Shown: positions 10,230 to 43,300 of the stretch, one piece after another
How positions within the stretch are numbered: position 1 is the first letter of the stretch
Layout: every line of letters begins with the position of its first letter
DNA from: Bugula neritina
Taxonomy: Eukaryota; Animalia; Bryozoa
Length of the DNA: 64,000 nt
Assembly (NCBI GenBank): GCA_964035545.1
Contig: OZ037766.1
Coordinates: forward strand, 1,364,001-1,428,000
Direction: 5' to 3'
The notes under the pieces: model-generated
The model's database searches: none
Seen by the model: the letters and a program-made list of their open reading frames with translations, nothing else
Told to the model about the DNA's origin: nothing
Position numbers and translations under genes: made by a program

Positions 10230-13200
10230 ATGAGTTGGGAAAGAAGACAAACCCTCTGGGAATTCCTGTTTTTGTTGATGTTCTGTAAGTATAATATTTC
10301 AATGCATTATACATTGGTTTAATTTACCTGCCGTCTTACACCTGCAGCATTATGCCTTTGACTATATACACTTATACTATTCCTAAGGGTTCCTTGGAGT
10401 ATTATTATTTCATTATTAGAAAACTTGGAATTTACGGAATATGTAACTATAAAGGTACATCAGGCAAACTAATCTCTTGATGTGTTTATTCTCTATGCAG
10501 CTATCAACTTTCACAGCAAACAAATAAACCCTACAGCATAGCAAGTCAATATTTCCATGCTCTTTAACTCGTAGGCTTTGTAACAAAAGCTGCAGCGGGA
10601 TTTTTTAAACTCACAGTATTTTTTATTGAATGGAATGAAGGCCAACAGCTCACCAGTAACAATCTTTGGTGATCAACAAATATAGATGTATATTCCTTAT
10701 ATAAACTTCTGTTTCATGCTTTGCTAGGCATTAACTTTAGTTCTGGAGGCATTGAAATATACACAAACCGCCCTCCGCACTCACTAGATGAGACTAGGTC
10801 CTTCTACTACGGCAGCATAGCCTTAGAGGGAGAAAATGTTACGATAGTATGTACAGTTGGTGAAAATTTTGAACTTTGGAGGACTTTTGAGAACATCACA
10901 CGGAAAGTAGTGCAGACTGGAGATGGCAGGTTAGCTGAGTTTGAACTTTGTGTTTTACTTTCTGTGATCAGTTGGAAGTATGAACTTTTAGTATTCTACT
11001 TAGAAGATATAATATTAGTTGGCTTATAGAAGCTATGATTAATTTCTAATTTGTTTTTATTTATCACCGTTGAAGTAGAATGATGATTTGATATTGCTCA
11101 ATGATTGATAAAAGGTTCAAATTTATTTATACACGCAGCAAATCACAGAATTTTAGTAATTTGTAGGTAAATATAACTTTTAAGCCAAGAAGTTTATATT
11201 CACAACCGTTAGTCAGAAATGACATTAATAATAACAATTATATTGAAAGCACGTAAAGCTTGATTTATTATTTAAATTACAATTTATTTTTGTTGATTCA
11301 GAATCATCCAATCAAGAAGCTCGTCTCATTTGAACACAACTATTACTAATGTGACATTTGGGGACACCGGAAATTACGGATGTGGAAAAAATAACTACTT
11401 TAGACTGAGAGTATATAGAAACCCAGGTATGTCTCAATTGTTTAATAAGTAAGGAAATATTAACTTTCAGTTGTCTTCTCTTTCCATTTCATTCTAGCTA
11501 TATTTATATTGTGTTACTCAGCAGAAGATCAAGAACTACCAACCATAGTAACAGCAGAATGTAAAGCTTATGAGTCAATGGAGAGCATTTCTGATGCCAA
11601 GTATGGAGTCGTCTGTTCTTTCTTCATTTCCACGCTGCCTGCTGACTTTATGACTTGGGATGTTTCACTTTACAAGAGGTGATGTAGAAAAGTTAAACAA
11701 ATTATGAAGCACAACGGTTAACCAATATAATTTAATTAGATTAGTGGAAATCTAGTATTTATTATAACAAATTGTATTTTAAACTCACATAGTTTATGGT
11801 TTCAATCCTCGTGAGAAGCTCTGTTAGTAAAGGTTTCGTTTAAAACAGACTAAGGAATTGCTTTCTACTGTGGCAAAAAGCTAAGCCAGTGCTTTACCCA
11901 CTAGACAATCTTGAAACTTTAATTTATAAAACAGAGTAACTCAAAGGAAAGATAGCTTATTTTAATTAATTACACATTTTCATGTGTAAATTACTCGTAG
12001 TATACAAGTTTATCTGTCAAGTTGTGTTTTTGTTATCCACTGACATAAATATTTATAGTTCTCCTTCTTTAGAGATGGAGTTGTCTGTCTCAGTGGAAAT
12101 TCAGTCAGTAAGTGTAGAGATACTTGTCAGCCATTGAATACCAGAAGGGCAGAGGATGGTACTGACATTGCAGAATGTATAATAAGGACGTCAGACACCT
12201 CCACCCTCAATGCTTCTTACTTAGAGTTTAAAACTTACGCTAAGAATCCCTTTAGCAACTCATCTAACAGAGTCAACTGCTCTGTTACTAATATGAAAGG
12301 TATGTACAATCAGATGGGAGGATAACTCTGAATATATCTAAATAGTTGAGAAAATAACTCCAAATTTGTATTCAAAAGCACACCCATTATGCTATGTAAT
12401 GTATGCCAAGCTCAATAGTACGAAAAAAACCTGTATTCACATGTTTGTTTATTATTATTATTATTTACATTTTTGTTTATTATTGCAAGTACTGCTGTTT
12501 TGTGATTAGGACTTGTGATCCCCAAATATATACAAGCTCAGTTTGAGGTTCATAAAGAATCAGATCCCAGCCGAGCAATGATTTGGATGAGTGGAGAGGT
12601 CAAGTGGGTTGATTATAAACTGTATATGGGATACGCCGCTGCCACAGGCAGCAATATTACTATCAGCTTAGAGGTAGACAACTCTAGGAATATGCCGTGT
12701 AACAGCACAGACCCTGGTGACCCAAGGTGAGTTGTAATATACTGTAATATGTCATATAGTATATATAATATACAGTAATATATCGTTGAGTTTATAGTAA
12801 TATACAGTAATATATCGTGTAGTATACAGTAATATACAGTAATATACAGCAATATATCGTATAGTATATATACTATACAGTAATATATATTATTGTACAC
12901 ATAATATACAATAATATATCGCAGAGTATATCTACTGCACAGTAATATATCATAGAATATATAGTAATATATTGTAGAGTATATAGTAACGTACAACACT
13001 ATATCGTAGAGTAATATACAGTGATGTATTGTACAGTACATATAGTAATATACCGTATATCATCACACTATAAAACTAATAATGCGCAGGAAGAAACTAA
13101 TAACAGATGGGAAGTGGCGAAACATCACTATAGAACATGTGAGCTACGAAGACGCCGGGCCTTACTTATGTAACAACGACAGAAAAGACCTCATTGTAAT

Positions 13201-16200
13201 AGATGCAGGTAATAAGTTATGTGCATCCAGAGTTGTCTTCTTTTGGGTCGGATATGCGCTAAAAAATTGCAATTCAATTGGAATTTATATAGTCCTAGAC
13301 AGTTATCAAGTCCTAATGAGTCAGGTACTGACATAATATAGTTAAAAGTGTCACTTATAGCTAGTAAAATATCTGAATTAAATGAATTATCTTCAATTGG
13401 TTTTGCTAACAGACACCTTGGTGTATTTCATCAGGTAAATCTCCGGCCATCTTGACGCAACGCTGCGAGTCTTTGGAGTTTAGAAATCTAATTTGTATTT
13501 TTCAAACAAACAGCAAGAAAAGGGATATGATGATGTGGAATGCGAAATATGCTTTTAACTCGTAAGTTTTTCCTGACTTTAATTTTTCCAGAGACAAATA
13601 GAAAGCAGTCGTAGCTTAGTAGTTAAAGAGATAGCTTAGTATATACACAGAGGTTGTGGGTTTGAATCTTGGTAGAGCCATTGGCAATTTAAGAAAAAGT
13701 ATTTGATCACAGTTGCTGACTTTCTTCTTAAATTGTATGATTCGATAATGAAAGCAGGAGAAACCAATTCTTTTATATGTCACGGGATTACAGGAACTCG
13801 ACAATATGTACTTATAATAAGGAGTTGTGTTCCCCTGTCAAATGTGAGCGAATGGAAACCTTCCTAGAAGATGGAGTAGAAAATATTAACTGCACTGTAG
13901 TTTCTCACCATCTCGTTCAAAGCAGTGAGATTGACTTTTTCTTCACAGCCTATAATCCATTTATCAACTCCAGTCTCTCAACACAAAGCGTAAAATTAGA
14001 CGCGTCTATAGGTTAGTTTACTATATTTTTATCAACATTTTAATAGAATACTAAAGTTGCTTTGCACTTCTCATACTTGATAGAATTTTTCTGCAACAAT
14101 TATTTTTGTAAATATTTATGTTCCTGTAAATTGAATTTAGTTTTTGCACATGAGCCATCAAGTCCAACTACACTTGCTCAGTTTTAAATTATGTCTGACA
14201 TCATTTTTTAAATTTAGAAATCATTTGTGTAAAGCCATATTGAATTTATACTCTTATAAAATCTTGGAGAAGTTTTTTTAGGGCACAGAGTAGTAAAAGA
14301 TTATATACCTATGAATAACATTTTTGTACAATACTCACTAAAACCATTAATAATTGTATAGAATACAACTTGCAGAAAGACAAGTGTCTTAAAATCGTAA
14401 TTTAAATATAATAGTTATCAATGTTTTAATAAGCCAATCTTGTTTATACATTCAAATAATCAAACTTGTGTGTAATTCTATACAGTTATAATAATTTAGC
14501 AGAACTTTCAGTAGCACTGTTTTCACTCATGTAACCATGGTAGCCACACTAAAATATTCAACGTATTATATTGTATGTTTCAGTGAAGTTTGAGATTAGC
14601 GACGTGAAAGCAGTATCAGTAGTAGACAGGCAGCTTTCTATCTCAGTTCTCATTAATAATGAAGCAGTGTTGGGGCAGCTGTTTAACTTTAGAGTTGTCT
14701 ACACTCATAAGGAGTTACCAGTTGAAAAGGTTCGTTTGATTTCACCATCTAACTTACACCTTCTGTTTTCTTTAGTACCAATTTCATGCTTATACAAGTA
14801 AGTTCATGAAATGTTAAGTTTCATTCGTTCGCAGATTGTGTTCATCTATTCCAATATTTTTTACTAGCAATTCATTACTAAATGTTTTGTTCAAGGTTTT
14901 CAATTTTGTCTGACACAATTTTGCCCTTTTTCTTTCTGATAGCCAGTGACACAACCAGTTTTGACTAGTTTAATGTTTATTTTTATTTTGAATAATTTTC
15001 CTGTAAATTTAGGTGGTTTTTGGTGATTAGTTATTTCATAAGATAGAAGTTTTGTCAAGATCATATCAATACTTTACTAGTATTTTCTTTCAGAACTTTG
15101 AAAACATGACGTTAGACACAGATTTGACCTTGACCGGGTTGAGTTATCACACAGAGTACCAATTGAATATTAGCTGTCAATTGAGCTCCACTAGAAATCC
15201 AAACACTTGGAGTAAAGAATACTATTTCACAATCTATTCCGCTACATCTCGTAAGTCTAAAGACATCAATTTAGTTTACATTGAGCTCTACATACAAAAC
15301 ATTATCATAAAATTATTATACTTTACAAGCCAACTTGTATAGTACAAGAGTAAAAAGGCTGCATATGGTATATTCAGGAGAAAGAACAGTACACTATTGG
15401 TTACGTTGGCTTGTTATATGTAGCACAAACTAGTAGATTAAATAGACACATCTACAAAAGTAATAGTTAGGTGACATAAATGTTTACATGGCATGTTCAT
15501 TGGGTAACCATGGCGATGAGTACAAACAATACTTTGTAATTACCTATAGTAAGGTAGTATTTCAGTTATACTGCATTGACAATACAGTGGCTAGCTAACA
15601 TTACACATTCCACACATTATCTCAAGTTAGTCTGTTAATAAGTACTGAAATGTAACTTTAATAGACCCTGTCAGAGTGCCAAGACACAGTCCCACTGGAT
15701 ATGAACTAAAAGAGTCAAAAGCATGTGGAGACAAGAGCCAACTTGTAACTTTGTTCTGGGAGGTGAGTATAGGGTTCGTTATGTTGGTCTCTAAATCGTT
15801 CCAACAACTTACAGTAAGCTAGAGAATGGCTTATCTAGAATGTTCCAATATAAGCTCATTTTATTCGCAAGTATTCGTTATGATGTATTCTTTGATAATC
15901 TAAAATCAATCCATTTTTCAGGCATGATTTTAAACACTGCCATCAAATGCAAGGCAAAATAATAACTCTACATTTAGTGAACAATGTATAGTTGTCTTTC
16001 AGTTGTTAGCTAGCATTGTTTTGTTGCTGTAGCCTCTTTCTGAGTCCGATGGATATGGTAACGGTGTCATCACGAAATACTCTGTCTATGAGTTAAATAG
16101 TATACCAACAACATTTACTCGACCAATCACATCGCAGGAGAAAGTCTACAATTTCCCCTCCTCATTCATTCTCTCTAGAAAGTCTATTAATGCCAAGGTA

Positions 16201-19200
16201 CTGTTAGACAGACACTTTGGTATTCACTTAACTGTGTATCTGTAGAAGTTGTGAACAGTTTCACCCTAACTAGTGTATCAATACTAGGTGTATACTAGGT
16301 GTGTACTAGGTGTGTACCAGGTGTGTACTAGGTGTGTACTAGGTGTATACAAGGTGTGTACTAGGTGTGTACTAGGTGTGTACTAGGTGTGTACTAGGTG
16401 TATGCTAGGTGTGTACTAGGTGTATGCTAGGTGTGTACTAGGTGTGTACTAGGTGTATACTAGGTGTATACTAGGTGTGTACTAGGTGTATACTAGGTGT
16501 ATACTAGGTGTATACTAGGTGTATACCAGGTGTATGCTAGGTGTGTACTAGGTGTGTACTAGGTGTGTACCAGGTGTGTACTAGGTGTGTACTAGGTGTA
16601 TACAAGGTGTGTACTAGGTGTGTACTAGGTGTGTACTAGGTGTGTGCTAGGTGTGTACTAGGTGTATGCTAGGTGTGTACTAGGTGTGTACTAGGTGTAT
16701 GCTAGGTGTATACCAGGTGTATACTAGGTGTATACTAGGTGTGTACTATGTGTTTGTAGGCATCTTCAAACTCGTCAGCTACAATGTGTGTCAGCAAAAA
16801 GATCAAATATTTAGCCTTAGTACCATTTACTTCTCGTGGAATGGGTACTCAACTAAGTGTTTACCAGTTACCTAGCAACATGATACGTAAGTAGAGATAA
16901 GCCATATGGGGTCTGATGGCGCCTTTCAACTTTTCGTATTTGTTTTTTTATTTTTCTTTGTAATTTAATGTTAAATTTCTGTTTAAACTCTGGCAGCAAA
17001 ATTGTGTTTTTGAAGTAAAAAATGTTTTTCTGAACTTTTGGTTTTCTGCTGCTCAGCAGTTTTATGTTTCTTAATTTATTAGCAATAAATAACGGTTAGC
17101 TTAAAATGTTTTAACATTTATTAAAACAATTTGAAATTCATGTTCACATGCACTGTAAAACTGTATAATAACTTCATTATTTCGTTGGGCAGCATTCCGT
17201 GGCTGTGAGATACAAGTTTCATACGACAGCAAACATATCATAGTCAAGTGGCCAATTCTACCGCGTTCTACCAGATCTACCGTGAAGCACATCTACACAG
17301 TATACTGGTGTAAGCCTGAAGCTAATAGAGATCAGTGTGTGCCTGGGGTGAGTGGAGGATAACTCCAATATATCTTTGTAAAATATTTTATTTATATCGG
17401 TACACACACACACACAACACACACAACACAACACACAATACAGGTTTATAACTGTGACACCAGAGAGATTATACAATATAAAGTGAGAATTCCCTGTACA
17501 TGCTGGACAGATAACTCCTGTAATGTTAATAAGCATAATTTCACTACTATAGAGTCTATTTTGAGTATAATAGTCATGTTTCAGACTATGAACTGGAGAG
17601 AGGCGAATCAGCAAGGTAAACTCAAGATGACATTTGACTCCATGTCAGCGGAATACAGATACGGGCTGAGTGTCAGCGACTCTTACGTGTCCAGTTCTTC
17701 TGGTATTGTCTGGGCTGACTGTATAAGTAACTCCAGCAGCCCCAGTAAGTGTTGTTATTATTATATCTTTACCTGTCTTTACCTGTCTTTCCTCTGTCCT
17801 GTACAGCTAATGGGTATAGTTATTATTATATATTGTATTATTAATATATATATATATTGTCATATTATTATATAATATTATTATTATTATATGCTACTAT
17901 ATTATTGTATTATATTATTATGTTAATATTATGGCATTAATATATATTATAGTATTATAATAGTAATACCATAGTATATCATTAATATATTTGTATTATT
18001 AATTAATAATATTATTTTGTTGCAATGTAGTAATTATGTTGCTCTAACCATGCCTCATGATTCATCATTTAGGTTGTAGTCTGGTCTTGAAGTTGTCTCC
18101 CTTTCTTTACTTATCTTTTCAATAAAAATATATTTTATATTATGTAACCCCAAATTAATTTAGTATTGATGAGATGTGTAAGCCTCATAACATCATTTAT
18201 TTGAAATAATTTATAAATATCAAGATTTTCAGATATTTATTGTTCTATAAATGTTCTGTTGAATATTTTTCCAACGCATATATTTATTCGCTTACTTATA
18301 TTTATGCCAGTAAGTTATACAAACATATGCAGGGCTGAAACCAGCTAGTGTCAACGTGGAGTATACAGCAAGAAAGGCGACAGTGACAATAGAGGACAGG
18401 TGCTCTTCAGACACCAGAAGAGCTGAAAGCTACACCCTTAGTTACTGTAACTACAACAGATCCAGTGAAAAGTGCATTGGTGAAGGTAATCACTCAGCAA
18501 TGCATTATGGGTCTAATAGCTAATTTCACCACAATGTGTATTTTATATCAATTATATATAGTTATTCCCATTTTGTTGTAGTCAATAAAGTCCAGGTTGG
18601 TCGCTGCAGAAGGCCGGTAGATACCGAGGAACTCCGATTCTCTCAAGACTATGGATTCTGGGTAACTTCTCATGCTGGAATAAATCTCAGTAAACCATCC
18701 AGTGTAGTCATCAAACAGAGCCCAGCCAAACGTAAGAACTGGTGATGTGCTCACAGCACAGGATGTCTACGACTTTATTTCTTGTTAGGATGAAATAAAA
18801 TTAAATACTTTTATGTTCAAAATTAGTTGAAATGAAGGACTTCTTCTGCATGTCCGCATATTTCCTGTTTCCTGTTGAGTCATTTTAGTTTTTATGATTG
18901 GAACTGGCTTAGTGATATAGAAATTATAGTGTCTTTTGAGTTGCCTTCAAGGGTAATAAAATAAATAGTAACCTAAAAAGCTTTATATTTTGAAAATAGT
19001 GTAAAGTTATATCGACATATTATTTTAAGCTACCACAATATCATTACATAAAGATGTCATTAGTTATTAAACAAATAGGTCAATATTTTTTATATAAGCA
19101 GGTCATATTTCCTTAGATAAATAGGTCACTGTTTACTATGTAGGTCATTATATAAATAGCATACCAGTATTCATCACCTAGTAAGTTATATTTAGTATTT

Positions 19201-21842
19201 AGGTATTTTAATATTTTTTAATTGCAGAGTTGAAGCACTATGAACTTGCTGTGATTTGCATCTGCCTGCTGCTGATAACTTCTACCATAACCCTTGCTGT
19301 TCTTTGGGTGAGGAGGTAAGAATGGTTTGATAGCCACGTACTGCTTGTTTGCCATGAATGCACATTTCACTGAAAATATGACAGAGAAGTATGTTATAGA
19401 AAAATAGTTATGAAAATATTGAGAAATATGCTGTAATAATGCCATTTTTTTATTAAAAGATTATGATGAAACATTTAAAGTTAAAGGTATTTTAATTTTA
19501 AATAAAATGCAATTATACAAATATTTTCAAATCTTAAAGTAAATAGTATAATGGGAAATGAAGTTTTCCAATTTTATCTTTAGGTAAATTTTGCGTTATG
19601 TAATGCTTTAGAAAATCAAAAGAGATCAATCAATTTAAATAGACAGTCACTAAATTAAGAATAGAATGCAATACCCATTGAGGGGAGACAACTTCCCATA
19701 TCACTGTAACTCCTTTACATGCTGCTTGTTTTATATTGAACTGTTAGACAGAAGAAGATGGTGCGAACTCTGAACAAGCCTCAAGTGATTGCCCCCACCA
19801 CTCTGATAAATGAGTTGCCCACCGACTCAGAGAGTGAAGACGATGATTCTGGAAAGTTCTACTCGAATGAGACTAGTGCTGTAAGTGGCAGCAGGCGTTA
19901 GTTTTGCAGCAAATTTGAGTTCTTCTGCAGATTCACTTTAATCATCATATGATTGGATAGTAAAATTTCCTTTGGAGATTTGTTTGTTTAATTTTTCAAG
20001 CTGTCATGGGTTAAGAGTTTAGCTCTGGCGATAAAACCCAGTTTGATGTTTAGAAGATTTTTTATTGGGCAACACTAATATATGACAACTATACTGTTTA
20101 TATACATGTAGTGTTTAGCACCTGTTAAGAATCATTTCTACTGCTTATGAATTGTTATATTACCACTTTTTAGTTGTCTAAGCAGTATCACATGTCTAAA
20201 CGCGAAGTAGTTTGATTTGGTCTTAGCTAGATATCTGTAAAATCTACTCTGCACGTCCCACGCCAAAATGAAACTGTGACCTGATACACAAATACCTGTG
20301 TGATTTAAGTAAATTTTTCATACAAAAAAACAAAATTACTTGAGGCTTTCTGTGCATATTTTGGCAGTTTATTCTAAATCACCACTCTTCAGAATAACGG
20401 AATCATTCAATCTGTTGGATAGAAATTTGAACAGAGAAAGATCTGTAATGCGCTGCATTGCTGTATAGTGCAGTGTAATGTAGTGCATTGCTGTGTAGTG
20501 CAGTGTAATGTAGTGCATTGCTGTGTAGTGCAGTGTAATGTAGTGCATTGCTGTGTAGTGCAGTGTAATGTAGTGCATTGCTGTGTAGTGCAGTGTAATG
20601 TAGTGCATTGCTGTATAGTGCAGTGTAATGTAGTGCATTGCTGTATAGTGCAGTGTAATGTAGTGCATTGCTGTATAGTGCAGTGTAATGTAGTGCATTG
20701 CTGTATAGTGCAGTGTAATGTAGTGCATTGCTGTGTAGTGCAGTGTAATGTAGTGCATTGCTGTGTAGTGCAGTGTAATGTAGTGCATTGCTGTGTAGTG
20801 CAGTGTAATGTAGTGCATTGCTGTATAGTGCAGTGTAATGTAGTGCATTGCTGTATAGTGCAGTGTAATGTAGTGCATTGCTGTATAGTGCAGTGTAATG
20901 TAGTGCATTGCTGTATAGTGCAGTGTAATGTAGTGCATTGCTGTATAGTGCAGTGTAATGTAGTGCATTGCTGTGTAGTGCAGTGTAATGTAGTGCATTG
21001 CTGTGTAGTGCAGTGTAATGTAGTGCATTGCTGTGTAGTGCAGTGTAATGTAGTGCATTGCTGTATAGTGCAGTGTAATGTAGTGCATTGCTGTGTAGTG
21101 CAGTGTAATGTAGTGCATTGCTGTATAGTGCAGTGTAATGTAGTGCATTGCTGTGTAGTGCAGTGTAATGCAGTGCATTGCTCTGTAGTGCAGTGTAATG
21201 TAGTGCATTGCTATATAGGGCAGTGTAATGCAGTGCATTGCTATATAGTGCAGTGTAATGTATTGCATTGCTCTGTAGTGCAGTGTAATGTAGTGCATTG
21301 CTATATAGTGCAGTGTAATGTAGTGCATTGCTGTATAGTGCAGTGTAATGTAGTGCATTGCTCTGTAGTGCAGTGTAATGCAGTGCATTGCTGTATAGTG
21401 CAGTGTTATTTTACTATAGGACAACAGCTGTGGGGAGAGTATGAACTACGCTATTCCTTCCCTGAAAGAGTCTGGAGATGCTACCAGCGTGTCATCCATT
21501 CTAGAAACTTCTCCATCCTACATTAATAACTCACTATATTCTACCTCTTGCACAAAAGAGTCATCAGCTGGGACATCCCTGCCAGACTCGGGCTATTTCA
21601 AGGTGGCCAACACTCAAAGTTGGGACGGGGACTACAAGGCCCCGTCTATAGTCTACACTGAGGAAAACTGCAGTGTAACACCAGATGGCTATTTTAAGAG
21701 TATGTGGGCGGACCCTGAGAGTGACCTACTTCTAGCAGACATCAAGAGCGGTGATGGTGTCATCGACATAGCCCAGCTGCTTTCATCTTCGGCTACATTT
21801 CTAGACGACTCATCAACAGATCTGATGGAGATGAGCGAGTAA
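10230..21842 (+). CDS. Type I cytokine receptor-like protein A (Domeless/gp130-like): SP-Ig-D1-Ig-CHR(D1+D2)-3xFnIII-TM-cytoplasmic tail, ~1133 aa
   Basis: 21 phase-consistent GT-AG exons: 10230-10284, 10728-10929, 11302-11426, 11522-11678, 12073-12299, 12510-12726, 13090-13208, 13435-13561, 13794-14011, 14584-14729, 15094-15250, 15665-15762, 16033-16197, 16760-16886, 17193-17347, 17585-17744, 18333-18485, 18582-18731, 19228-19315 (TM LAVICICLLLITSTITLAVLWV), 19748-19880, 21420-21842; total 3402 nt. Signal peptide MSWERRQTLWEFLFLLMFCINFSSG; Ig motifs DTGNYGC and DAGPYLC; GLSYHTEY...NTWS; VTLFWE-PLSESDGYGNGVITKYSV; YTVYWC; SSGIVWADC; Box1-like KPQVIAP. AATAAA at 22256. Confidence 0.85.
12732..13060. 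repeat. Degenerate AT-rich minisatellite (agtaatatatc/ac-like) filling an intron of receptor A
   Basis: Repeated gtaatata units; explains the Tyr/Ile-rich ORF 12613-13041 (-). Confidence 0.75.
13606..13680 (+). mobile_element. Degenerate tRNA-derived SINE-like fragment in an intron of receptor A
   Basis: GTAGCTTAGTAGTTAAAG (A box-like) ... GAGGTTGTGGGTTTGAATCTT (B box-like). Confidence 0.45.
16282..16750. repeat. 10-bp minisatellite (TACTAGGTGT/G-type)
   Basis: Roughly 45 tandem copies of actaggtgt(g/a)t, ending about 10 bp before the acceptor at 16759. Confidence 0.95.
17820..18040. repeat. Low-complexity (ATT)n-rich tract
   Basis: Runs of tattattata in an intron. Confidence 0.7.
20368..20444 (+). 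CDS. Candidate additional/alternative cytoplasmic exon of receptor A
   Basis: ttggcag acceptor and open frame (L)YSKSPLFRITESFNLLDRNLNRERS, then gtaatg. In frame only with the alternative donor at 19896/19897 (c|gttagt); adds 31 aa in total. Confidence 0.45.
20445..21410. repeat. 30-bp satellite GTAATGTAGTGCATTGCTGT(A/G)TAGTGCAGT, ~32 copies
   Basis: Near-perfect tandem array built from 5-mer subunits; source of the spurious (HYITLHYTAM)n and (QCNVVHCCVV)n ORFs. Confidence 0.97.
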
Positions 21843-23177
21843 TTTACCTGGTCTGTCGTAGTACAGGTATTCTCACTCTCCCTCACCAATACTCATTTCT
21901 CAGTTCTCTTACTCCAAAGGGTGGTGGGCCTATGCATTTCTAACAGTTTTAAATCTTGTTGAACTCAATCAGCCTTCAGGTCTTGTTTAACTCACTTTCT
22001 TCTCGTGACCAGTTTGCCTTCATAATATTTATTGTTGAAATTGTTATGTTGTTGTATTTTCTTGTAGTATTTTGTTGCGCCATTATATTTTATGGTCATA
22101 GTTTTTATATTATGTTGTATTATGATGTCATATTATTAACTTTTATTTTAGCTAAGTATATGAGCAAAAGTTTTATTTGTGCACACATGACAATCATCAA
22201 AATGATAAACATGAAAACGACTTGGTTAATTGTATTTTTCTACAATAATATATGCAATAAACTGCAACTCCCTATTAAGTTCTTGTCTTGAAAAAGGCTG
22301 CATTTACGAATAATCATATTCATATATCTGAAGAAATCAATAATTCTATCTTCACAGCAATTGTCTTTTCATATTATAGTTTGGCCTAAAAAGTTTGGCC
22401 AAGAATTATATTATATATTATATATATTATATTATATAACCTATATCAAAAATTAATAATTGCTACTGGTGAATAGTTTATATAATAATATAACTACTTT
22501 ATAAAAATGTTGCAACAGCTTTAGTAACTGGACAAACAGCAACCTCGAAAGCAAGAGATATTATGAACAAATAATACAAGTTTAAAATTTGATTTAAAAT
22601 TGGGAGTGCTGTTGACTGTATTTATTCACACTTGAGAAATGTTTTAATTTATTTTACTGGATACAATGCAGCTATACAAGAAAGGTTTTTGTTCCGTTGC
22701 AACGCACTGCACTGCTAAGTTAGTGAGTACATATTTAATATTGTATACAACAGGTTGAAAAACCACAAAGAATCAATTTATAAGATTGTTGACTTGAGAC
22801 CGCGTCTTGAGTAATCATGATTGAGTAAAACAAATGAAGCGTTACCTCTTCGCCTACCTGTATAGCTGTTGTGAATAGCCTGTGAGCTTATAAATAGACA
22901 GCCTTTGCATTATGTAAGATAATAACAAGAAATGAGGCACTTGGCATAGCTCGACTTTCTTGTTTATGTAGCTACAGTTAACTTGTATATAATGACTTAT
23001 ACCTAGTAGAGAGCTGCTTCTAAGTATATAGTGACATTGAGAGAGTGGACTAACTGGAGTACCCACACTGTGCACCAAGTTACTAAAAGTGGAAGAATAA
23101 CAGATCTACACTACAAGAATTATAGCACAGCTCTTAAAAGTGGACATAATTTAATTCATCTCTTCTGAGTTGAAAGG

Positions 23178-30545: not shown

Positions 30546-30632
30546 ACATCATTTGCTGCCGCTACCAACTCTGAGGCAGCAGCCAAGGTAAAGCCAGCCG
30601 GCATCCATCTGCGAGTTTTAGAAATACCGAAG
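30546..30632 (+). other. Candidate 5' UTR exon of receptor B
   Basis: ttttgttattgacag acceptor and aag|gtatgt donor around a GC-richer segment upstream of the ATG exon. Confidence 0.35.
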
Positions 30633-31399: not shown

Positions 31400-34300
31400 A
31401 TGGAGCTAAGTCTGTGGTCGTTGGCTGTGCTGCTTTTGGCCTGTGGAGCTAATTCTAGTCAAGGTAAAATTTTATTTTTTGCGGTTTGGTTGATCAATTG
31501 AGATTGGTTTGGTTGATCAATTGAGATTCGCATCTTATCAGCACTTGTACTCAGTGACTCCAACTCCTGGACAGTCGGCTGGAAATTTGCACGTTGGTTT
31601 TGAAAGTACCTTGGAGAGAATGCTGAAGTCTGGAATTTGGAGTTTGAGGGGCACAGGGAGTCATATAAACCCTAAAACACTTCCAAATGTTTCTCTTGTA
31701 CTAACTGAGCTTTGTTAGACCATTTATATGGGCTGATAGAAAAAGAGACTTCTATTTATAATTGAACACAAATTCATATCAAAATATGCACCTAGTCCTA
31801 GTAATATCCATATTACTCTAATAATATTGTGCGAGTAAATCTTTTCAATTTTGTAAGTTTCACATTGCATAAAACCATAGTGCATTTTAAAGCAATGTCA
31901 ATATAACACTTAATAATTGTATCAAATGACACTGACATTACATTTCCAGATGTCAGGCTGCCGGTAGTCCTAAACCAGGAGTGTTACTCTGAGCGCTTCA
32001 CCAACCTGATTTGCTTGTTCGAGACGAACATGGAGTTAAATGAATCTGTCAGCTGGAACGTGACGTACATTACCAGGTGGGTTATATTCGCTTTCACCAA
32101 GCAACTGGCTGATTGCTTTTGTGTCTTTAAATGTCCAGAGTGCTGACTGGGAAATAAAGAAAATAAAACTGGAATTCATATCAATAATGATACTAACTTC
32201 AATGAAAATGTCGGTTTAATAGTACCCAAGGAAGCTCTCACTATGATACTTGGAAGGAAGACCAAACTATTGTTCACAACGACATAATATTAATTTCGAA
32301 GCATAAACCCTGAGATTATTTGAGAAAATAGAAGTTACATTTATTAGCTATAAAAACTAATGATTATATATTGCTGTCTAATATTATTTAAAGGCTTACT
32401 CTAAAAGCCGACAACTTCCATGCATTATGTATACCTCTCGAATTTTAACAAAATTTGCAACAAAAGCCATGAAGTAAATATTATTGATCCTCTACAGAAG
32501 TTGATTAAGATAGAACAAATTGGAAATAGCTCAAATAAATGAAATCTACCAATTTAAAACTTCTCAAATTTTAGAGCAAGGCGGCATTGTGTTATCGGGA
32601 AGTGTACCTACCTTGCATGTGATTCGCTGAAGGTGTTGCCAGTTGTCCGGTCAGGGAGAGACTATCAGATGCTGCAGTGTCTAATTAAAGGCAGCACTAA
32701 AGTGTTTATAGATGCTTTGTATGACTGGCAGGTGACTGGAGTCAGCAATAACCTCTCCACGTCATCACTTACCAGCACCAAACTTTCTTCAGACATCTGT
32801 AAGTTCTGCTAACTTGTATACATTTTTTACCTCCACTGGAATTCAAACTCGAGACCTCCGGCTTGCGGGCAGGGGATACTGAGTAATCTCAACACTGCGT
32901 CCCACCTAGTTCTCTGAACTTCACTAGCCTCTCTACTACTCTTTCAGTCACCAGGCTCCCCTGGCCTCTTGACTCCCTCAGAGTACAACTACACTTCACT
33001 AAAGGTCAAAATAGCTTATGAAGCTTTTGTCCCCCCCCCCACTGGGATTCGAACCCGAGACTCCTTACTGGCAAGCAGGTGCGCTAACCATCATACCACA
33101 GGGACCACTGGGTAAACTCAACCCTACAGTTTGTTAAAATCTACAGTATTGATTTTATAATTAACCAATTAAATAGCTTCAAAGCAAAATTCACATTTAT
33201 GTTAAACAACAAGTTGCAATAGTTGTGTGGAGTTATCTATTCGTATTCTATGTATGTTGGGAATACTAATTACACAGTGAAACTGGAGGCTCCAGCTGTT
33301 TTGAGTCACATCTCTAGAAACGACAGCCTGTCAGTGAAAGTTCAGCTCTATGAAGAAGATATGCTGACAATCAGCTTTGGTCAGTTGGGGATGATAGAAG
33401 CAGCAGTAATGAGTCAAGGGATTAACTACCTCATAGATGTGGAAAGTCAACACACAGAAGCTGTGAGTAAAATGGCTGCTGTAGTACAGGTATATCATTC
33501 TTCATCAGCTGTGGCTTTTTTAGTTTGAAGTTTTGGTTTGCAGGTTAAATATCTCCACTATTAGATAGAGCCTTTATTGCAGTGTTGAGCCCCAAATATA
33601 TTTTATTACATTTTCTGCATATGGTAAAATTAAATGCAGTATATTCTTGTGTTGGCACAAACGCACTATGTATTTATATTACTGTATTGTAATAATATAT
33701 GAACATGAGTTATGTATATTGCTTCATGTACTGTGATAATATATGAACATGAGTTAGTGTATATTACTGTATCAATTGTGATAATATGTGACAATGAGTT
33801 AATGTAATATATAATATGATATGGTAGTGCAATAAGATAATACAATAAGATAATATAATACAGTATTACTGTTCTCTCCACAGAGTCACTTCCAGCTGAA
33901 ATACACTGCAATGGACACCACCAACTGGTTACACATTCCAAATCTCCAGCCAGGCACAAACTACACAATTAGAATATTCAATCAGATAAGACAGGCAGCT
34001 TATGGCAGCTACTGGGGTGATGCCACTCAACTTATGGCGACCACTCTCCCACCTGGTGAGAAATTTACTCATGTTGAGAACTCTGCTTTTAATGTGTGCA
34101 TAAAATAAATTTCAAGATTATACATAAAAACTGTGTTGTGAAAGAAAAACAACATTTATAAGCGAGTAATTAGACAGAAAGATGTTCTTTAGGACGAAAG
34201 TTACTTTCAACTGCAGAGGTGTTTGTTGTATATACGCAGTTAGACTGTAAGCATTAGAGACCTCATTGCATGATGGTTGCTGTGAAGTTTATAAACTTCT

Positions 34301-37300
34301 CACCAACACAGAAGAGATGATGTCACACACACTTCCTGTTTCATAGGGTGTATTTCTGAAACACTCTTCTACTATTTAGGTACAGAAATGCCAAGAGCTC
34401 TGAGTGATGAGCTCTCGCCTATAGCTGTTGATTCTTTGACAAATTATATAACCATGGCAGCAAACTATGTAGCAGAGGATGGATACGCAGGCTATGAGGC
34501 CCGAGTTGGAGATACAGTAACTATCCGCTGTAGAATCAGAAACGCAACTGCGCCTCGAGATCTCTTGTACTCAAATGACAATGGTGCTATTGGTTTCCTT
34601 CAGGAAACAGATAATAGGTATGAGCCATGGTGTCTATTGAGCGAAGGTTCCCATGGTAACAGTAGTCCTTGGTAACAGTTGTTATGGTGACATTAGTTTT
34701 GTAACAGTTGTTATGCAGTGCTTGGTAGCAGTTGCTATGATAATATTAGTCATTGGTAACAGTTGCTATGATAACAATAATAATAGCCATTTCGTAACAT
34801 GAATAAGATAGAATATTGCATGGGGAGACTGCGAACTTGATGTTGCTCAGATATTGGTATGTGAGTCACTGTTATAGAATAACGAGGCTAGAGGACTCAG
34901 ATTGGGTGAACATAACTTTGCACGATGTTCAAATAGCAGACAGCGGGATGTATTCTTGTTCAGATGATGAGAAACGTCTGAGAGTAATTGAATCAGGTAT
35001 GTGGTACAACAACTCCCCTCTTAGTACATTTGATGACTTGAACTGGCTCATTTTTAATTCAATACCTTTTAAATAAAGCTCTAGCAACTGGGAACAAAGA
35101 TGGTTATTCAATTTTAATTTACTCGATACCTACCCAACTTGCAGTTTTGAGTATTGTTAACACTTCTGGGGTTCAGTTTTGTGTCTATCACACATAGCTT
35201 TGGCTGCAGTACAAAATAGAAAAACAAAAACAAAATTATAAAAGTTTAAATTAATTTGGATAATGCATTAATATCTTGAATTATAATGTTACTTGCTGAG
35301 TTTTGTCACAAGTTTAAAAATAATTTCCACAGTCACTGTAGTCTTTAGCTGTAAAATTTTATTTTATTTTGAACTCTATATAAAGTCAGACGCATTTCAT
35401 TTTTCATCTTAGAGCTCATACATGTGATATCTCTTACATATGGCATCTCATGTGATGTTGCACGTGGCGTGTGCAGTTTATACTGTAATAGATTATCTAA
35501 TAAGTGAAAATATAAAAACTGATATAGATTTCTAAACTGACAACTAATACTTTGCTTATAAACACTGGGTACAAATGTGTTATTTATTTTAGCCGTGGAT
35601 CCATCTACAGCGCTGGCTTATGAAACTACAACAATAGTGCAGAGCATGAGGCTAAGTGCCAGACTCATGATGGACGCGAAGTATGTGAACATCCCCAAAC
35701 CTAAACACTCGTCCTTCAAACACTACGCCGGCTATGTAGCCAAGGTGGGCGACACAGTGACCATCAGCTGCGAACTATACGACTACTCATCCACCCTTAC
35801 TCTACTAAAGACACTGTCGAATGGAACTAGGCTATTTATAGACATGACGAAAGACAGAAGTAATAGGTACGATCATGTTTGATAATAATTTTAACTACAA
35901 CTATAGAGGAGACGACTTCATGATTGTGAACTAATGCAATGGTTGGAATAAATAGTTTACTTTGTAGCGTCAAACTTAACCAGCATTTGAAACTTCGACT
36001 GAGTAATAACTTTGTTTTTTTTTCTAGGAAATTAAACGTATTTAGTCATTATGATTTGAAGAGTTGGTGGAGCATATAACATAACATGTTGTTTGGAGTT
36101 GAGTTGTTTTCTTGTATTTCACAAGACAGCAGCTGCGGCTGTGGTCAGTAGAGTGTTTTACTGCTAAATGACTCTCAAGTTGGTAACTTGTCAGTATTGA
36201 AATGACACTTTTCAAACCAAATCTCCATCAATTACAGCTACTCACTTGCCTTGCTTGCCTTACTGCAAGCTTTTAAATGCACAGTTGTTGCCTTGGTAAC
36301 AACTTACGTACGCTTGTAACTTACATCTCTACCATTACACTTAGTTATACAATCACCTTGTTGCAGAGTTTCAGTCAACAGAACAAATAAATGGCTAAAT
36401 GTGACGATCTTCAGCACGCGAGAAGAGGATTCTGGGAAGTATAAATGTTCCGACGATCTTCGATTTCTGACCGTAGTGAATCCAGGTGAGTATAGCCAGC
36501 CAATCAAACGCCAGCTCATGTTATGCACACAATTAGAACTCAATTTGTATTGGTCACTTTCCATGAATTTTCTTTTAATTAAGAATAAGTCTTTGGGGAT
36601 TTGATTCCATCTCAAATTGAATAAACCGATTGAATTGAAGTAAATAAAATAATTATGCTATGAATATCTCACACAATGTGAGCTACAATGTAAAAATGTT
36701 AATCAACATTTGTACAGTCAAAGACTGAAACAATTTTCTTTTGCAATTTTGTTTTAAAAATAACGGATTTTAAAATTTGAACCATTTTTTTCCTGTATGC
36801 GAAACAGCACATGGCACCTTTTATCTGTTGAGTTATAATAGTTACAATGCAACATGATATGTAGAATTATTATACTTCAATATTATAATCTATTATGTAA
36901 TAACATCTTTATTTCAGCCACTCCTAGTAAGTATAAAAAGTTGTTTTGAATATGGCTATTGCTATTTTAATAATAGATATTTGTGAGCATTTCTTTTCTT
37001 GTAACAAACTTATTGTGACTTTGTGGTGTGTTTTTCAAAATGTGCTAACATTTCTTATTTCACTGCTCAATGGTTATCTACATATTATCTTGCAGCTCAT
37101 TGGTTATCTATATCTTATCTTACAGCTCATTGATTACCTACATATTATCTTGCAGCTCATTGGTTAGATACATCTTATTTTACAAATCATCTGTTATCTA
37201 TATCTTATCTTACAGCTCATTGGTTATTTGTATCTTATCTTACAGCTCATTGGTTAGCTACATTTTATTTCACTGCTCATTAGCTACATCTTTTCTTACA

Positions 37301-40300
37301 ACTCATTGGTCCCTGATATCATATCTTCTCATAAGTTATTGAATAACAAATTTCAAGCTATTCAGTTTTGTGTAACCTATAGTTTCACTTTGTGTTGTAA
37401 CATCATTTAAAAGTGGATAGAAATGCTACCAGTTGCTCAGCACTTCTATATAGATAAAAGAACTAGTAAGAACAATGATATCTGCTTATTGCACATGCCC
37501 TTATGGTTTGGCTGCCTTTAACTATATAGAAAATATTACGCCCATTCTGGGGTTTGAACCCAATCTGCATAGCAGAGGGTGGTAAGCACTTATCCATTAC
37601 TCTACCAGGCCTGCCCTAATAAAAAGAATTGAATAGTTTGTTGTTTTTATGCTATCAGAGAATCCACCGAGGGTAACAGGACACAGGTGTGAGTCATACA
37701 GAGACGAGAACTACACCTGCACGTTTGACACAAATACCATTTCCACTGACGTTGTGTTTTGGACACTTAAATTTTCTACAAGGTAGTTTAAAACTTAAAT
37801 TGCCAGCGTTATTAATACTTGACCAATGTTATTACCACTTGACCTATATGTAATAGTTGACCTATATAAATACCACTTGACCTGTATGTAATAGTTGACC
37901 TATATAAATACCACTTGACCTAAATGATGCAATAGCTGACCTATATAAATACTACTTGACCTATATGTAATAGTTGATCTAAATAAATACTACTAGACCT
38001 GTATGAACTATGGTGTAATACTTGACCTATATAAATACCACTTGACCTAAATGATGCAATGGTTGACCTAATATTAATACCACTGCAGTTCTAACAATAC
38101 AGCTAAACTTATGTGAGTAATACCTGGTCTAGATTCATTATGACATACTGCATATTTAGAAAGACATTTAATCTTGCACTGTTTCATAAAAATACCAATA
38201 CCTTGACAATACATTGTCAGAATTGCTTTTGCCCTGTTTATGTATGAGAGTTTATAAAGGTTTGGTATTCTAACTTCAATATGCAGCAAATAATTCATTT
38301 GATGTTCTAAACTTTAATCACCATTAAAATAGATATAATATCTTATAACAGAGAGATTAGACATTGCCTTGGAGGTTTTTGTAAAAACCTGGAATGTAAC
38401 AAACTGACGGTGGTTCCGGGAGAGGCTGGTGCCTTTGACCAACTCGTCTGTGAGAATCAGAGTTTCTGGTTTATAGACATGGTTTACGACTGGATAATCA
38501 GGGGAGATAACCCCTTCATCAATCACACTTCTACACTCTCTACTATTCTCAACTCCTCTGTTGGTATGCAATTAATCAATTGACACTAAGGGAGTGTTCA
38601 TTTTTGGAAATAGTCCTTTATTTCTAATATGAAGATAGTTAACAGCTTTGGCAGATGAATGATTTGGAGTTGTCTACTTAAAATTTACCCTGACAAATAG
38701 GGCTATTTCAGTCAGGAAAAGTTTTGATTCAAAATCTTTTATTAGGTTGTAAATGATATATAGAGAGCATAGTCTTGGTTGAACTAGCTGCAGTATATGA
38801 AGCAGAAACATTATTTTTCCAAAAAAAAAACTTTGTTATTCTTATTTCAAATTTGTCCAACTAAAATTAGGTAAGGAATTAATACATTTTAAATTTGTCA
38901 TACTTTGCGTTAGACTGACACAATTCTTATCGCATAATTTTAGTAAAACTGGGACCACCAAATATAGTCGATCATAAAAGTCTCTCTGATAGCATCTCAC
39001 TTGATGTTGCATTGTTCAATAAAGACTACAATTCACTAGTCTATGGCTATGCCGGGCACGTAGAAAACGCCGTCATCAAATATGGGATGAAGATTCAGGT
39101 CACTCTAAGGTCACATCCTCAGTTTGAGTCGTCTTCCCTTGATAAGACCCCAAACGTGGTAAGCCAGGATGATATTTGCTCTAATATGTTATGAAGTTGC
39201 AGGTGTTGCTTTAAAATCATGTCATATAACCTATCCAACCGGTATATGTGGAACAGCCAGAACTGTGAAAAGCTTGATCATGTTACCTGTATTTTGCATG
39301 AACTACTAGAACTAGAATGAAGGCCCAGGTTACTAGCAGATTAGTATAATATGCTATATGCTTGCTATAGCAGTTTTAGACCTGTAAACTACTTGTATAT
39401 TATTGTTAGTGTTTACAAGTTATTTCAACATGTTACCAATTCTAGCACTAAAGTATGCATGCAAAGTATTAATTAGTTGAATTAAGTCACACAAGAAATT
39501 GTTAGGTAGCAAAAAACCTTAAAATATAAAAAGTGTGTTTGTTACTAGTGTGGTAAATATTATGAGTTATCCCCCTTGACACTTTACTTATGGCTATTTT
39601 TCTAAATACTGTAATCATAGCTAATTATGTAGCGTAACTTTCTAATACCTTAAACACTATGGCTAATGTTGAGCTTTTAACATAGTAAATAGTTAATCCC
39701 CTTTCCCCCAATTACAAGTTACAATACGCATAGACTTGGTTGGGTTCTTTTTTGTTGATTCATGTAAACCGACAGTTGGACCGATTTCGGCAGGTGGATG
39801 CAGGCAGACCGAATGTCGATTACCGATATTTCCAGTGTCGGTTGCCGACATGACGAATGTCGGTATCCCCTGCCGAATATCGGCCCGCTGTCGGTAGAAG
39901 GTTCTAGAAGTCCTTTGTTCTACCAGTATAAAAGGACACGCATTTTAGAGCTTCAGTCACTTGCGGACTGGAGCTCACACTGGATACTTCTCACTGCTAC
40001 AATAAAGTACTGCAAGCACATGGCAACCTCTCTCTCTTGTCTCTTCTATAACAAGGAGTTATGTTCTCTGCCTGATTTCATTTTATCACCCACAAAACTA
40101 CTACACTAGTTCTAACACTAAAGTTGCGTACCAATACTCCACAGGAAGTGAGAGTATATACCAACAAAGGACCAAGGAACTGGATATACATCTCGGACCT
40201 GGAACCCTACACCACATACGATATCAGCGTCACTAATCAGTTGAACAACACCGTGAATACAGACATCTGGAGCCAGTCTACCAACCTCACCCTGTCCACC

Positions 40301-43300
40301 AAACCCACTCGTGAGTCAAATCACATTCTCAAATCTGAGCAAATCTGCTCATTGCAACAGTAAAGAATTATTCTGATATATTGAAAAACGTAAATTGAAA
40401 TTTCACTCTTTGTTTAAGAAAATTGTGAGGAAGCTTCAATGGTGCATGTTTTTGCGTGTTGCTTAAACCTTCGTAGGTAAAATAAAAAGATAAAATAGAC
40501 TAGGTGAAGGGTGTCGGCTTACCTGCTGTATTATGCTGATGAAATCCAAAACTCATCAATATCTTGTTGGTGATGGTAGAGAAGCATCTGCTGGTTAAAG
40601 CTTTCAGCTGACTTTCTCACAAAGAAAGTTCACAGTCTTCCAAACATTTAAGATTAAACTCAGTAAACAAATGTGAATTGTTGTGTGTTTAAAAATAATT
40701 TATGATATTTGTGTTACTAAATTTATGATATTTTTAGTTGCTGAAGTTGGTCCTGAGCAGAGCTTGTATGGCTTCACTATTCAACAGAGTTCAAAGTGTA
40801 AACCTAAGAGAGAAGTATCCCTGTACTGGAAGGTAATTTACTTGCTGTGTCACACCATGTCACACCCTGTCATACACTGTCACACCCTGTCATACTGTGT
40901 CACGCTGTGTCATGTTGTGTCATACCATGTCACACTCTCTCATACACTGTCACACCCGGTCACATTCTGTCATACACTGTCACACCCGGTCATACTCTGT
41001 CTCACACTGTCACACTCTGTCATACACTGTCATACTCTGTCATATGTCTAAAGGAGAATGACAATAAATGTAGGCTTTTCTAAAAATGTTTGTAAAATCT
41101 GAAGTGTCAGTTATGATTGTATTTCTTTCGTTATAATAAAAATCAAACACAAAGTATGACCAGCTATTGTGATTATAAGTTTATATTATAGTAGCTGGTG
41201 TTTACCAGGTTATATATTTGACCTTCTCATTTCATCACAAGGAAAGGGCAAATGGTCGTCATATTTATTTTGAACTATTTTATTTTCAAATAAATAAAAA
41301 GCAGTTCTACAACGTTGTTTTAATGAGATAAATTGAATGATGTTAATTATTTTAGGGAGTTCCAGAAGCTTCTGGAGAAGGTAACGGAGTTATCCACTCT
41401 TACTATATCAACTCTGTTGATAATTTCCATCTGACAAAAGATGGCTACACTAGAAAGATTCAACTTCTTAACTCTTCTACACATACTCAGCAGGTAAAAA
41501 ATTTGAGCTGAGGAATTTTTGTCTTTTTTATTTAATAATTAAACATTTTCAAAAAGCAAAAGCATACAAGTTTATGAAAGCAATTAGACTATAAAACTTT
41601 GCAGTTGCCAGCTAGTGTTAAACGCTGAGATTTGACTAAATTCTAAAATTAATTAGTAAAGAGTATAAACATACATGCAGTACAATAATTACTGGTAAAA
41701 ACAAAATAAAAAGAGACTTTGTAAACATATGTAGCACTATTGTAATACTGAGAGTATGCTAGACTAGCGTGTGATATGCTAATAGTATGATATACTAGCG
41801 TGTGATATGCTAATAGTATCCTAGACTAGTGTGTGATATGCTAATAGTATCCTAGACTAGTGTGTGATATGCTAATAGTATCCTAGACTAGCATAATTGT
41901 GGTTATATTCACAGGCTGTGTTACCAGGCAGTGCTAGAATAGCAGAGCTGTGTGCAGACAACAACGAGACGGTATTTGAAATCTTCCCCGCAAATGATGC
42001 CGGCATGGGGCAGGAGGGCAGCAAATATTTTATACCTGCTCAAACTGAAGGTAGAGTTTTGTGATGAGATTATATCCATTACACATTACATGTATGTCAC
42101 TTTGAAATATGATTTTCACATAATGAAAATCTTATCCATGACTTTCACTGATATACATAGCTTCATTACTCTGTAGTCTCACATTAAGGCTTGTATCAAC
42201 ATTTTAATCGCTAGAATAATCCTGGATTTCTTATTCATGTTAAGTTTAATCTACCAAATAAATGTTGAGTTCTGAGTTTGTCTCCCTGCTATTGTTTATT
42301 CAATGAATAGATATATAGGTCACGTGATGTCGGCACTATGTCATCAGTCTCTGCATTGTTTCAGTGTTAGAGTTGAGAGAATGTGACATCTCGGTGGACT
42401 ACTTGAAGTCTTCAGATGAAATGTCAGTCAGTTGGTCTCTACACACCAGAAGTTACAACTACACAGTGTTCTGGTGTAACACTGACTTTGGAGATCAGTG
42501 TGTGAAGCAGGTAGGTGTCTAGCCTCAGTTTTATAGCCTTAGGTTCATACTTTGACTAATAATCAGCAACAAGGTTGTTTTATATTCTGTTAGAATACCA
42601 TTGTATACATAATTAACTGAGAGGTTATATATACCAGGGTAATTTTAAAATCGTTCTTTGAGAGTGTTGATGGACATTTTTTCTGAGATGGGCTGTTGTG
42701 ATGTAATGACCTCTAGGTAAATAACATCCAAGTGAATAATGGCCTTGAGGTATACAACATTTAGGTACACGACTTCAAGGTAAATGATCCCTAAGTGAAT
42801 AACCTCAAAGCATATGACCTAGAAGCATGTGACCTTTATAGAAATGTGTTTACATTAACTTTATTGGGTTTACAGGGTTGATCAGTTCAACAGAATTGTA
42901 TAATTGTGAGCCTGTGTGTTTGTGGCTGGTATTTAGAGAGAGATAGAGAAATGAGGCCTCAACAAAACAAGAATAATATATTTTATTGTCAAGCTGCCTT
43001 TTGCCAAAAACAAGAAACCTTTGAGCTAATTTCTAAGTGACTGTGAGGTTTATTGTATCTAGTTATAGCCAAAGAGTGTATAGGATATTTTTCAATTTTG
43101 CGTTGAAAAACTCATCTGTCAATATACTTCACATTTGGAGAAATATAGCTATTTTTGCTGTCCGTTATGTGTAAAATTTTACCGTTACATAAATGCTGTT
43201 GTCCGACTCATAGCTCTTGGTAAATAATTTAGAAAAAACGCCAACTTTTGCTAAATACCATATGAGTCATATTTTTGTTTTTATTATATTATTTTAGGGC

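Follow-up and report, generated by a model that had tools for sequence, protein, structure and literature searches.

Three tandem genes for putative class I cytokine receptors with rearranged ectodomain modules in the bryozoan Bugula neritina

A window of 64,000 nucleotides from the genome of Bugula neritina (GenBank assembly GCA_964035545.1, 216 Mb; contig OZ037766.1, positions 1,364,001 to 1,428,000 of the forward strand; coordinates below are those of the window) contains three collinear + strand series of short coding pieces, referred to here as genes A, B and C. We read them as a tandem cluster of three ‘tall’ class I cytokine receptor genes of the gp130/Dome type whose extra ectodomain modules would have arisen by in-frame duplication of exon blocks, and we put the probability of this reading at roughly 0.6. 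Each receptor would consist of a cytokine-receptor homology region (CHR, made of the domains D1 and D2), three membrane-proximal modules of ~100 aa, a transmembrane (TM) helix and a tail in which a proline motif lies close to the membrane. The spliced models bear out the claim of an earlier note on this DNA that the paralogues differ in module number and order upstream of a common core. Gene A reads Ig1-D1x-Ig2-D1-D2 (Ig, immunoglobulin module; D1x, an orphan D1), gene B D1n-D2n-Ig1-Ig2-D1-D2 (D1n and D2n forming an N-terminal CHR) and gene C D1-D2, each followed by the common core of three ~100-aa modules (3+2+2 exons, each phase-1 bounded), a TM exon and two tail exons.

The strongest single argument for CHRs in these genes is the gene structure, because the exon-level Pfam and PDB matches are weak. 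All 13 modules (four Ig, five D1, four D2) are encoded by two stop-free exons with AG/GT sites between phase-1 introns, and the internal intron is in phase 2 in every Ig and D1 and in phase 0 in every D2, exactly as the earlier note had stated. Its further point, that the modules are symmetric 1-1 units and can be duplicated in frame, holds as well. Within each module type the internal introns of all copies align with one another; the first exon of all four Ig modules ends in a split arginine codon (AG/N), and the internal intron of all five D1 modules lies 4-5 residues ahead of the first invariant cysteine of the second exon. Across the CHR this gives the phase series 1-2-1-0-1 in all four complete copies (A, B N-terminal, B proximal and C), and the orphan D1 is consistent with it. 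Class I cytokine receptor genes have the same intron phases as those of class II. For helical cytokine receptors the pattern 1-2-1-0-1-0 is known from class II receptors (PMC8863823), and Ciona has conserved a GP130-like splice structure (PMC1963337).

Splice sites were picked so as to obey the GT/AG rule, keep the frame open and carry the phase from exon to exon, and the full chains were then checked. The spliced models of A, B and C are intact as single-pass receptors, with all introns GT..AG and zero phase breaks; in a few cases the choice of acceptor is uncertain by 6-40 nt (Ig1a of B, 34347/34380/34386; D2b, the second D2 exon, of B and C). On the + strand, gene A spans 10728-21842, gene B 31400-46628 and gene C 49620-61017, and the core of A (15665..21842) can be aligned to those of B and C along its full length. 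Both B and C have complete reading frames, of 1376 aa (Met to stop; its first exon is signal-like) and 818 aa, respectively. The exons are as follows.

10230-10284, + strand: gene A, candidate start/signal exon (ATG, 18 codons, hydrophobic stretch, gtaagt donor, ends in phase 1)
10728-10929 and 11302-11426, + strand: gene A, Ig1 (phases 1-2-1)
11522-11678 and 12073-12299, + strand: gene A, orphan D1 (D1x; phases 1-2-1)
12510-12726 and 13090-13208, + strand: gene A, Ig2 (phases 1-2-1)
13435-13561 and 13794-14011, + strand: gene A, CHR D1 (phases 1-2-1)
14584-14729 and 15094-15250, + strand: gene A, CHR D2 (phases 1-0-1)
15665-15762, 16033-16197 and 16760-16886, + strand: gene A, core module 1
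17193-17347 and 17585-17744, + strand: gene A, core module 2
18333-18485 and 18582-18731, + strand: gene A, core module 3
19228-19315, + strand: gene A, TM exon; 19748-19880 and 21420-21842 (stop), tail exons
31400-31463, + strand: gene B, start/signal exon (ATG, hydrophobic core, gtaaaa donor, phase 1)
31950-32076 and 32575-32798, + strand: gene B, N-terminal CHR D1n (phases 1-2-1)
33278-33462 and 33884-34055, + strand: gene B, N-terminal CHR D2n (phases 1-0-1)
34380-34617 and 34878-34996, + strand: gene B, Ig1 (phases 1-2-1)
35593-35866 and 36367-36485, + strand: gene B, Ig2 (phases 1-2-1)
37659-37782 and 38352-38563, + strand: gene B, membrane-proximal CHR D1
38944-39158 and 40145-40310, + strand: gene B, membrane-proximal CHR D2
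40738-40832, 41356-41493 and 41915-42050, + strand: gene B, core module 1
42365-42510 and 43409-43562, + strand: gene B, core module 2
43856-44008 and 44406-44552, + strand: gene B, core module 3
44767-44848, + strand: gene B, TM exon; 45495-45660 and 45954-46628 (stop), tail exons
49620-49701, + strand: gene C, signal exon
50107-50248 and 51423-51652, + strand: gene C, sole CHR D1
53280-53470 and 53943-54102, + strand: gene C, sole CHR D2
54341-54420, 55094-55180 and 55500-55629, + strand: gene C, core module 1
56576-56721 and 56973-57126, + strand: gene C, core module 2
57740-57892 and 58506-58646, + strand: gene C, core module 3
59106-59190, + strand: gene C, TM exon; 59834-59969 and 60478-61017 (stop), tail exons

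The span of 10728-40310 proposed earlier includes no start or signal exon of A, and gene C lies beyond it. No D2 exon pair was missed after 12299, since the gap at 12300-12509 (210 nt) is too short for one, and the D1 in this position is a genuine member of its class. In a test with locally built leave-one-out profiles (E-values for a nominal 100,000 sequences), D1x scored 28 bits (E 1e-5) against a D1 profile built without it, compared to 67 bits for B D1n, 55 for B D2n, 35 for A Ig1 and 40 for A Ig2, and no module matched the profile of another class. D1x also retains the invariant cysteine, phenylalanine and tryptophan positions of the D1 family. The second Ig of gene A has a leucine instead of the B-strand cysteine.

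Database searches were run exon by exon, and joined modules were used only in local alignments, trees and profiles. The exon-level matches are weak and would all point in one direction, to cytokine-receptor, fibronectin type III (FN3) and Ig families: the first D1n exon of B against EpoR_lig-bind (E 0.011), the second D2 exons against fn3 (E 0.004-0.07; 0.004 for D2n of B and 0.07 for D2 of A), and the Ig exons against ig, V-set, Ig_3 and I-set (E 0.003-0.15; the second exon of A Ig1 gave E 0.02-0.13 with Ig_3, V-set and I-set). The five D1 copies share C11, C21, F23 and W35 in the first exon (C-x9-C-x-F) and C5, C15 and C33 in the second, which corresponds to two cysteine pairs at a spacing of ~9 residues, predicted to form disulfides, with the phase-2 intron between the pairs. 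Together with D2, this domain may fold as an elbow-linked FN3 pair. A PDB search with a profile of the four D2b exons returned many FN3 domains, of which fibronectin and tenascin repeats scored best; the alignments that reached past the W-S position were to IL-31RA (E 6e-4) and IL-2Rb, whereas the matches to gp130 D2 ended before it. The three membrane-proximal modules may be FN3 domains too.

All three genes have a TM exon, and after the basic stop-transfer residues a conserved P-x-(V/L)-(I/V)-x-P follows, a putative Box1-type proline motif. Elsewhere in the genome, a JAK-type FERM_F2 exon (35 bits) and STAT_bind exons (36-42 bits) were found above the Pfam cut-offs, and signalling would run through these JAK and STAT genes. 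An exon-by-exon genome search gave no match to Jak1_Phl or to IL6Ra-bind, a type of search that does not show absence. Pfam scans of all core exons of B, made at the level of single exons, also gave no match, and the top row of an ESM Atlas search with two D1 half-domain exons (AMA-1/PAN, 0.81) was at chance level.

Several observations weigh against our reading, those on receptor identity being given here and those on transcripts and on module trees further below. No exon match reached the Pfam gathering threshold. Exon profiles of D1a and D1b, the two D1 exons, and of F1b and F3b, exons of the membrane-proximal modules, found nothing relevant in PDB. The WSXWS motif is degenerate: only W-S is kept in A (W-S-K-E-Y) and in the proximal D2 of B and C (W-S-Q-S-T), and the N-terminal D2 of B has W-G-D-A-T. 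The sub-threshold Pfam matches, together with the fibronectin and tenascin repeats at the top of the D2b search and the missing IL6Ra-bind match, could be accommodated by another Ig/FN3 cell-surface family, such as adhesion proteins or phosphatase-like ectodomains, in which the phases and cysteine spacing would be coincidental. We consider this highly improbable, as it leaves to chance the exact 1-2-1-0-1 series in four independent CHR copies, the spacing of the D1 cysteine pairs and the EpoR_lig-bind match, the fact that the D2b alignments of greatest length, to IL-31RA and IL-2Rb, continue across the W-S position, and an overall plan like that of gp130 and Dome, in which a CHR and three modules precede a TM helix that is directly followed by a proline motif.

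All exons of each gene would be joined in one mRNA. The junction introns measure 95, 210 and 325 nt, and among the stop-free segments of the + strand no start codon with a signal peptide was found ahead of A Ig2 or B Ig1. With neither room nor a signal peptide for separate downstream genes, single genes are favoured. The model of A (1114 aa) opens in phase 1, and an upstream start exon is therefore needed. The segment at 10230-10284 would imply an intron of 443 nt, similar to the 486 nt and 405 nt of the equivalent introns in B and C. A second candidate start exon lies at 2871-2934. On the + strand of positions 1-1935, stop-free pieces resemble by eye the last exons of a carbohydrate sulfotransferase-like gene, and this gene end bounds the space for the first exon of A.

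The coding frames of gene A are supported by polymorphism. A search for sequencing runs covering the locus found one run (X1), which contained 87% of the sampled words; because these included introns, X1 is DNA. Over 10100-16000, X1 and the assembly disagree at 30 single bases, of which 13 are exonic (1793 bases) and 17 intronic (4108 bases), and both of its indels are intronic. Eight of the exonic differences are synonymous and five non-synonymous, compared to an expected synonymous share of 21-29% (p = 0.002-0.014). This synonymous excess supports the predicted frames of A, chiefly in Ig2 (six of seven differences synonymous; four of four in its second exon) and D1, and it demonstrates purifying selection on part of the gene. 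The coding sequence of A is no less polymorphic than its own introns, its changes being mostly synonymous; a bias in contig sampling may contribute. The assembly contains no second haplotig of the locus.

On the side of transcription, four points count against us. X1 is the only run found and yielded zero contig joints, module skipping would be in frame everywhere and is a possible alternative, polymorphism is nearly silent on Ig1 (one non-synonymous site) and D1x (zero sites), and the segment at 10230-10284 is the best candidate for the signal exon of A, as a candidate only. The extra modules could be cassette exons that are mostly skipped, or the main product of the first five exons of B could be a soluble CHR protein that results from read-through beyond 34055; the layouts would then be options among isoforms and not fixed architectures. 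All module borders are in phase 1, so that skipping would keep the frame; read-through of the donor at 34055 leads to a stop after 16 codons, and there is no RNA run among the runs found for the locus. We nevertheless regard this explanation as unlikely, since the parts downstream of the extra modules lack a start codon and signal peptide of their own, splice-site strength does not set the 12 extra-module exons apart from the rest (p 0.6 and 0.8), and all extra modules retain their hallmark residues.

Turning to the origin of the extra modules, a genome-wide profile search (216 Mb) recovered five copies of D1a, five of D1b and four of Ig-b, all within the A/B/C cluster. The closest pairs are intragenic, with identities of 36% for B Ig1/Ig2, 34% for B D1n/D1, 35% for B D2n/D2 and 28% for A D1x/A D1. 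In the unrooted D1 tree (15 topologies), the best three all split the two D1 modules of A from those of B and C (D1x and D1 of A against D1n and D1 of B and D1 of C; summed weight by resampling of estimated log-likelihoods, RELL, 0.89), and the CHR quartet was ((A,Bn),(B,C)) with RELL 0.94. A local origin of the extra modules, as claimed in the earlier note, is thus supported by the cluster-only exon types and by the D1 tree, while the Ig tree gives it no such support and a pairing of D1x with D1n of B is not rejected; the step from there to exon blocks is one we infer.

The multi-module layout could also be ancestral in the cluster, similar to that of LIFR or the leptin receptor, with A having lost the N-terminal D2, C having lost everything upstream of the proximal CHR, and D1x of A being the orthologue of D1n of B. 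The module order can indeed be aligned as (Ig)-D1-[D2]-Ig-(Ig)-D1-D2, and the maximum-likelihood Ig quartet weakly pairs Ig1 of A with Ig1 of B and Ig2 with Ig2 (RELL 0.63), a quartet whose three topologies lie within 1 log-likelihood unit and which is uninformative. Topologies that join D1x with D1n of B are 6-7 log-likelihood units worse than those that join it with D1 of A, yet they survive the approximately unbiased test (p 0.07-0.20). Two further points against local duplication are that concerted evolution within a gene could cause the gene-wise clustering, and that no relatives from other species by which to date the duplications were found in the protein collection or the JGI metagenomes. 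What tips the balance is the RELL weight of 0.89, the identity of D1x, lower to D1n of B (24%) than to D1 of A (28%), and the finding that D1n and D2n of B are each nearest to the proximal modules of B itself, so that we judge an ancestral layout improbable.

In our preferred reading, local duplication of exon blocks, the phase-1 borders would allow unequal recombination within the cluster to add whole modules in frame. Gene A could be written as (Ig-D1)(Ig-D1)-D2, and the simplest route to it would be one tandem duplication of a four-exon Ig+D1 block, which would explain the lone D1 between two Ig modules. The CHR-Ig-Ig-CHR layout of B, in which a CHR would have been placed ahead of an Ig doublet, could result from duplicated exon blocks of CHR and Ig in the B/C lineage or from a deletion-fusion of adjacent paralogues. 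If gp130 and LIFR are a guide, ligand-binding sites II and III would be provided by the CHRs and Ig modules, and the extra modules may provide different or additional ligand contacts in A and B.

The searches also gave several observations on relatives and on the DNA of the locus. Only an F2-type exon has distant relatives elsewhere in the genome, in a paralogue at C4:10851998-10852138 (10.85 Mb) with F1-, F2- and F3-type exons, of which an F3a-like exon occurs twice, ~2.9 kb apart; a weaker F2b-like match was located at C4:15926080. Upstream of the 10.85 Mb paralogue, the search recovered no recognisable CHR exons. It was tried as an outgroup and rejected, as only its F2-type exons were recognisable; the module trees are unrooted because its CHR was not found. 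A search of 1.8 billion proteins with a profile of the F2b exon returned only an unrelated repeat protein of 4774 aa and a fragment of 77 aa. Had the collection included a protein derived from transcripts of A, B or C, this profile would have matched it. The 77-aa fragment is an open frame on the metagenome contig k141_79538 (ENA ERZ27264296, 1159 bp); it resembles the F2b exon (E 8e-4) and is probably DNA of a related animal in the environmental sample. A scan of JGI metagenomes with the orphan D1 exon gave no match.

Genes B and C share 94-98% DNA identity over the D2b, F2a, F2b and F3a exons (within 40145-57892; 94% for D2b) and 77% over F3b, whereas the D1, D2a and F1 exons are too diverged for blastn, and D1 and D2a are ~25-33% identical as protein. 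Such a mosaic is consistent with gene conversion acting on the ‘legs’ of the receptors and with divergence of the ligand-binding part.

The DNA of the window is AT-rich (GC 0.30-0.41). Its introns hold several minisatellites. The last intron of gene A contains 31.8 copies of a 30-nt unit (20454-21406, 96% matches), and open reading frames of ~350 aa on both strands of this array were rejected as repeat artefacts, not genes. Others begin a few bases 3' of the 5' splice site (12734-12971, 37813-38084 and 40858-41044), and an array in gene C (50248-50558) begins at the donor itself, with GTAAGT within the repeat unit. The intron between D1n and D2n of B carries a dispersed repeat of ~250 bp (32878-33128; at least 40 copies at 74-81% identity, on all large contigs), probably an element of the SINE/MITE type (short interspersed element/miniature inverted-repeat transposable element).

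The layouts of gp130 and LIFR used as references in the earlier note are correct: gp130 has an N-terminal Ig followed by five FN3 domains, of which the D1 Ig and the CHR bind cytokine sites III and II, and LIFR binds LIF via Ig-D3 (PMC7378365). The note had not recognised the layouts of A and B, but to call them unfamiliar goes too far: half-CHR and Ig+CHR duplications are known in vertebrates (PMC1963337, PMC12284397). In the literature searched, we found no description of these exact module orders, nor of any bryozoan receptor in the family. The cytokine receptor homology domain (CHD) is partially duplicated in OSMR (‘CHD 0.5’), fully in LIFR and together with an Ig in the leptin receptor, OBR (PMC1963337), and strings of exons for the cytokine receptor homology (CRH) region were duplicated recurrently, in whale shark GHR, chicken and anole PRLR, TPOR and gnathostome LepR (PMC12284397).

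Similar to gp130 (IL6ST), the bryozoan genes show an Ig-CHR-three modules-TM-tail plan, a proline motif and a four-exon CHR with conserved phases. They differ in that their exon-level similarity is marginal, the WSXWS motif is degenerate, and the proximal modules 2 and 3 are Cys-rich, with an FN3 nature demonstrable for none of the three; gene A is moreover extended at its front by a second Ig and a half-CHR. Gene A recalls OSMR (‘CHD 0.5’-Ig-CHD-3 FN3) in having a half-CHR, then an Ig, then a full CHR. The orphan half here is a D1 of the N-terminal type with Cys pairs, and an Ig stands before it, whereas the half-CHR of OSMR is the other half. Its (Ig-D1)(Ig-D1)-D2 order also looks like a truncated form of the Ig+CHD duplication of the leptin receptor (PMC1963337).

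Gene B shares with LIFR (CHR-Ig-CHR-3 FN3) a full extra N-terminal CHR that is separated from the proximal CHR by Ig. However, B has two Ig modules between its CHRs and so departs from the LIFR-type layout, and its N-terminal CHR is nearest to that of B itself and groups with the local CHRs, which points to a separate duplication and not to an orthologue. We would thus call B LIFR-like at most by analogy, and not a member of the LIFR type. As to the claim that LIFR-like layouts arose independently by local module duplication, the local origin stands, while independence from vertebrate LIFR draws on the literature, in which only one gp130-like receptor is reported from Ciona (PMC1963337). Gene C, with a CHR and membrane-proximal modules and no Ig, is similar to Drosophila Domeless and to IL-31RA/IL-12Rb1, and is a candidate invertebrate JAK/STAT-type receptor. 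The Dome CHD is encoded by a single exon (PMC1963337), whereas the bryozoan genes keep the split, vertebrate-type structure. The in-frame mechanism that we propose is the same as that of the CRH exon-string duplications (PMC12284397), which differ from the present case in that this one is lophotrochozoan, lies in a tandem cluster and involves a half-CHR+Ig block and an Ig doublet. Gene A can be described as OSMR/LepR-like and gene B as LIFR-like with an Ig doublet; the variation is real, the theme is a known one, and no new kind of system is involved.

A wider and rather doubtful extension is that the locus represents an independent lophotrochozoan multi-receptor ‘tall’ cytokine system, with gp130-like, LIFR/LepR-like and Dome-like chains side by side, cassettes that may be alternatively spliced so that one locus gives several ectodomain architectures, and possibly heteromeric complexes. 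If true, the cluster would mirror, by convergence, the receptor set of the IL-6 family in vertebrates.

Class I cytokine receptors are poorly described outside vertebrates and insects, and the surveys consulted have no coverage of Bryozoa (PMC13203501, PMC1963337). This bryozoan keeps the vertebrate-type split CHR gene structure that was lost in Drosophila dome, and its symmetric blocks of exons apparently served again in the making of taller receptors, which gained a second CHR, a half-CHR and an Ig doublet. The cluster would thus be a natural example of repeated, lineage-specific module duplication in the cytokine receptor family, and A, B and C are concrete receptor candidates for finding the still unknown helical cytokines of invertebrates.

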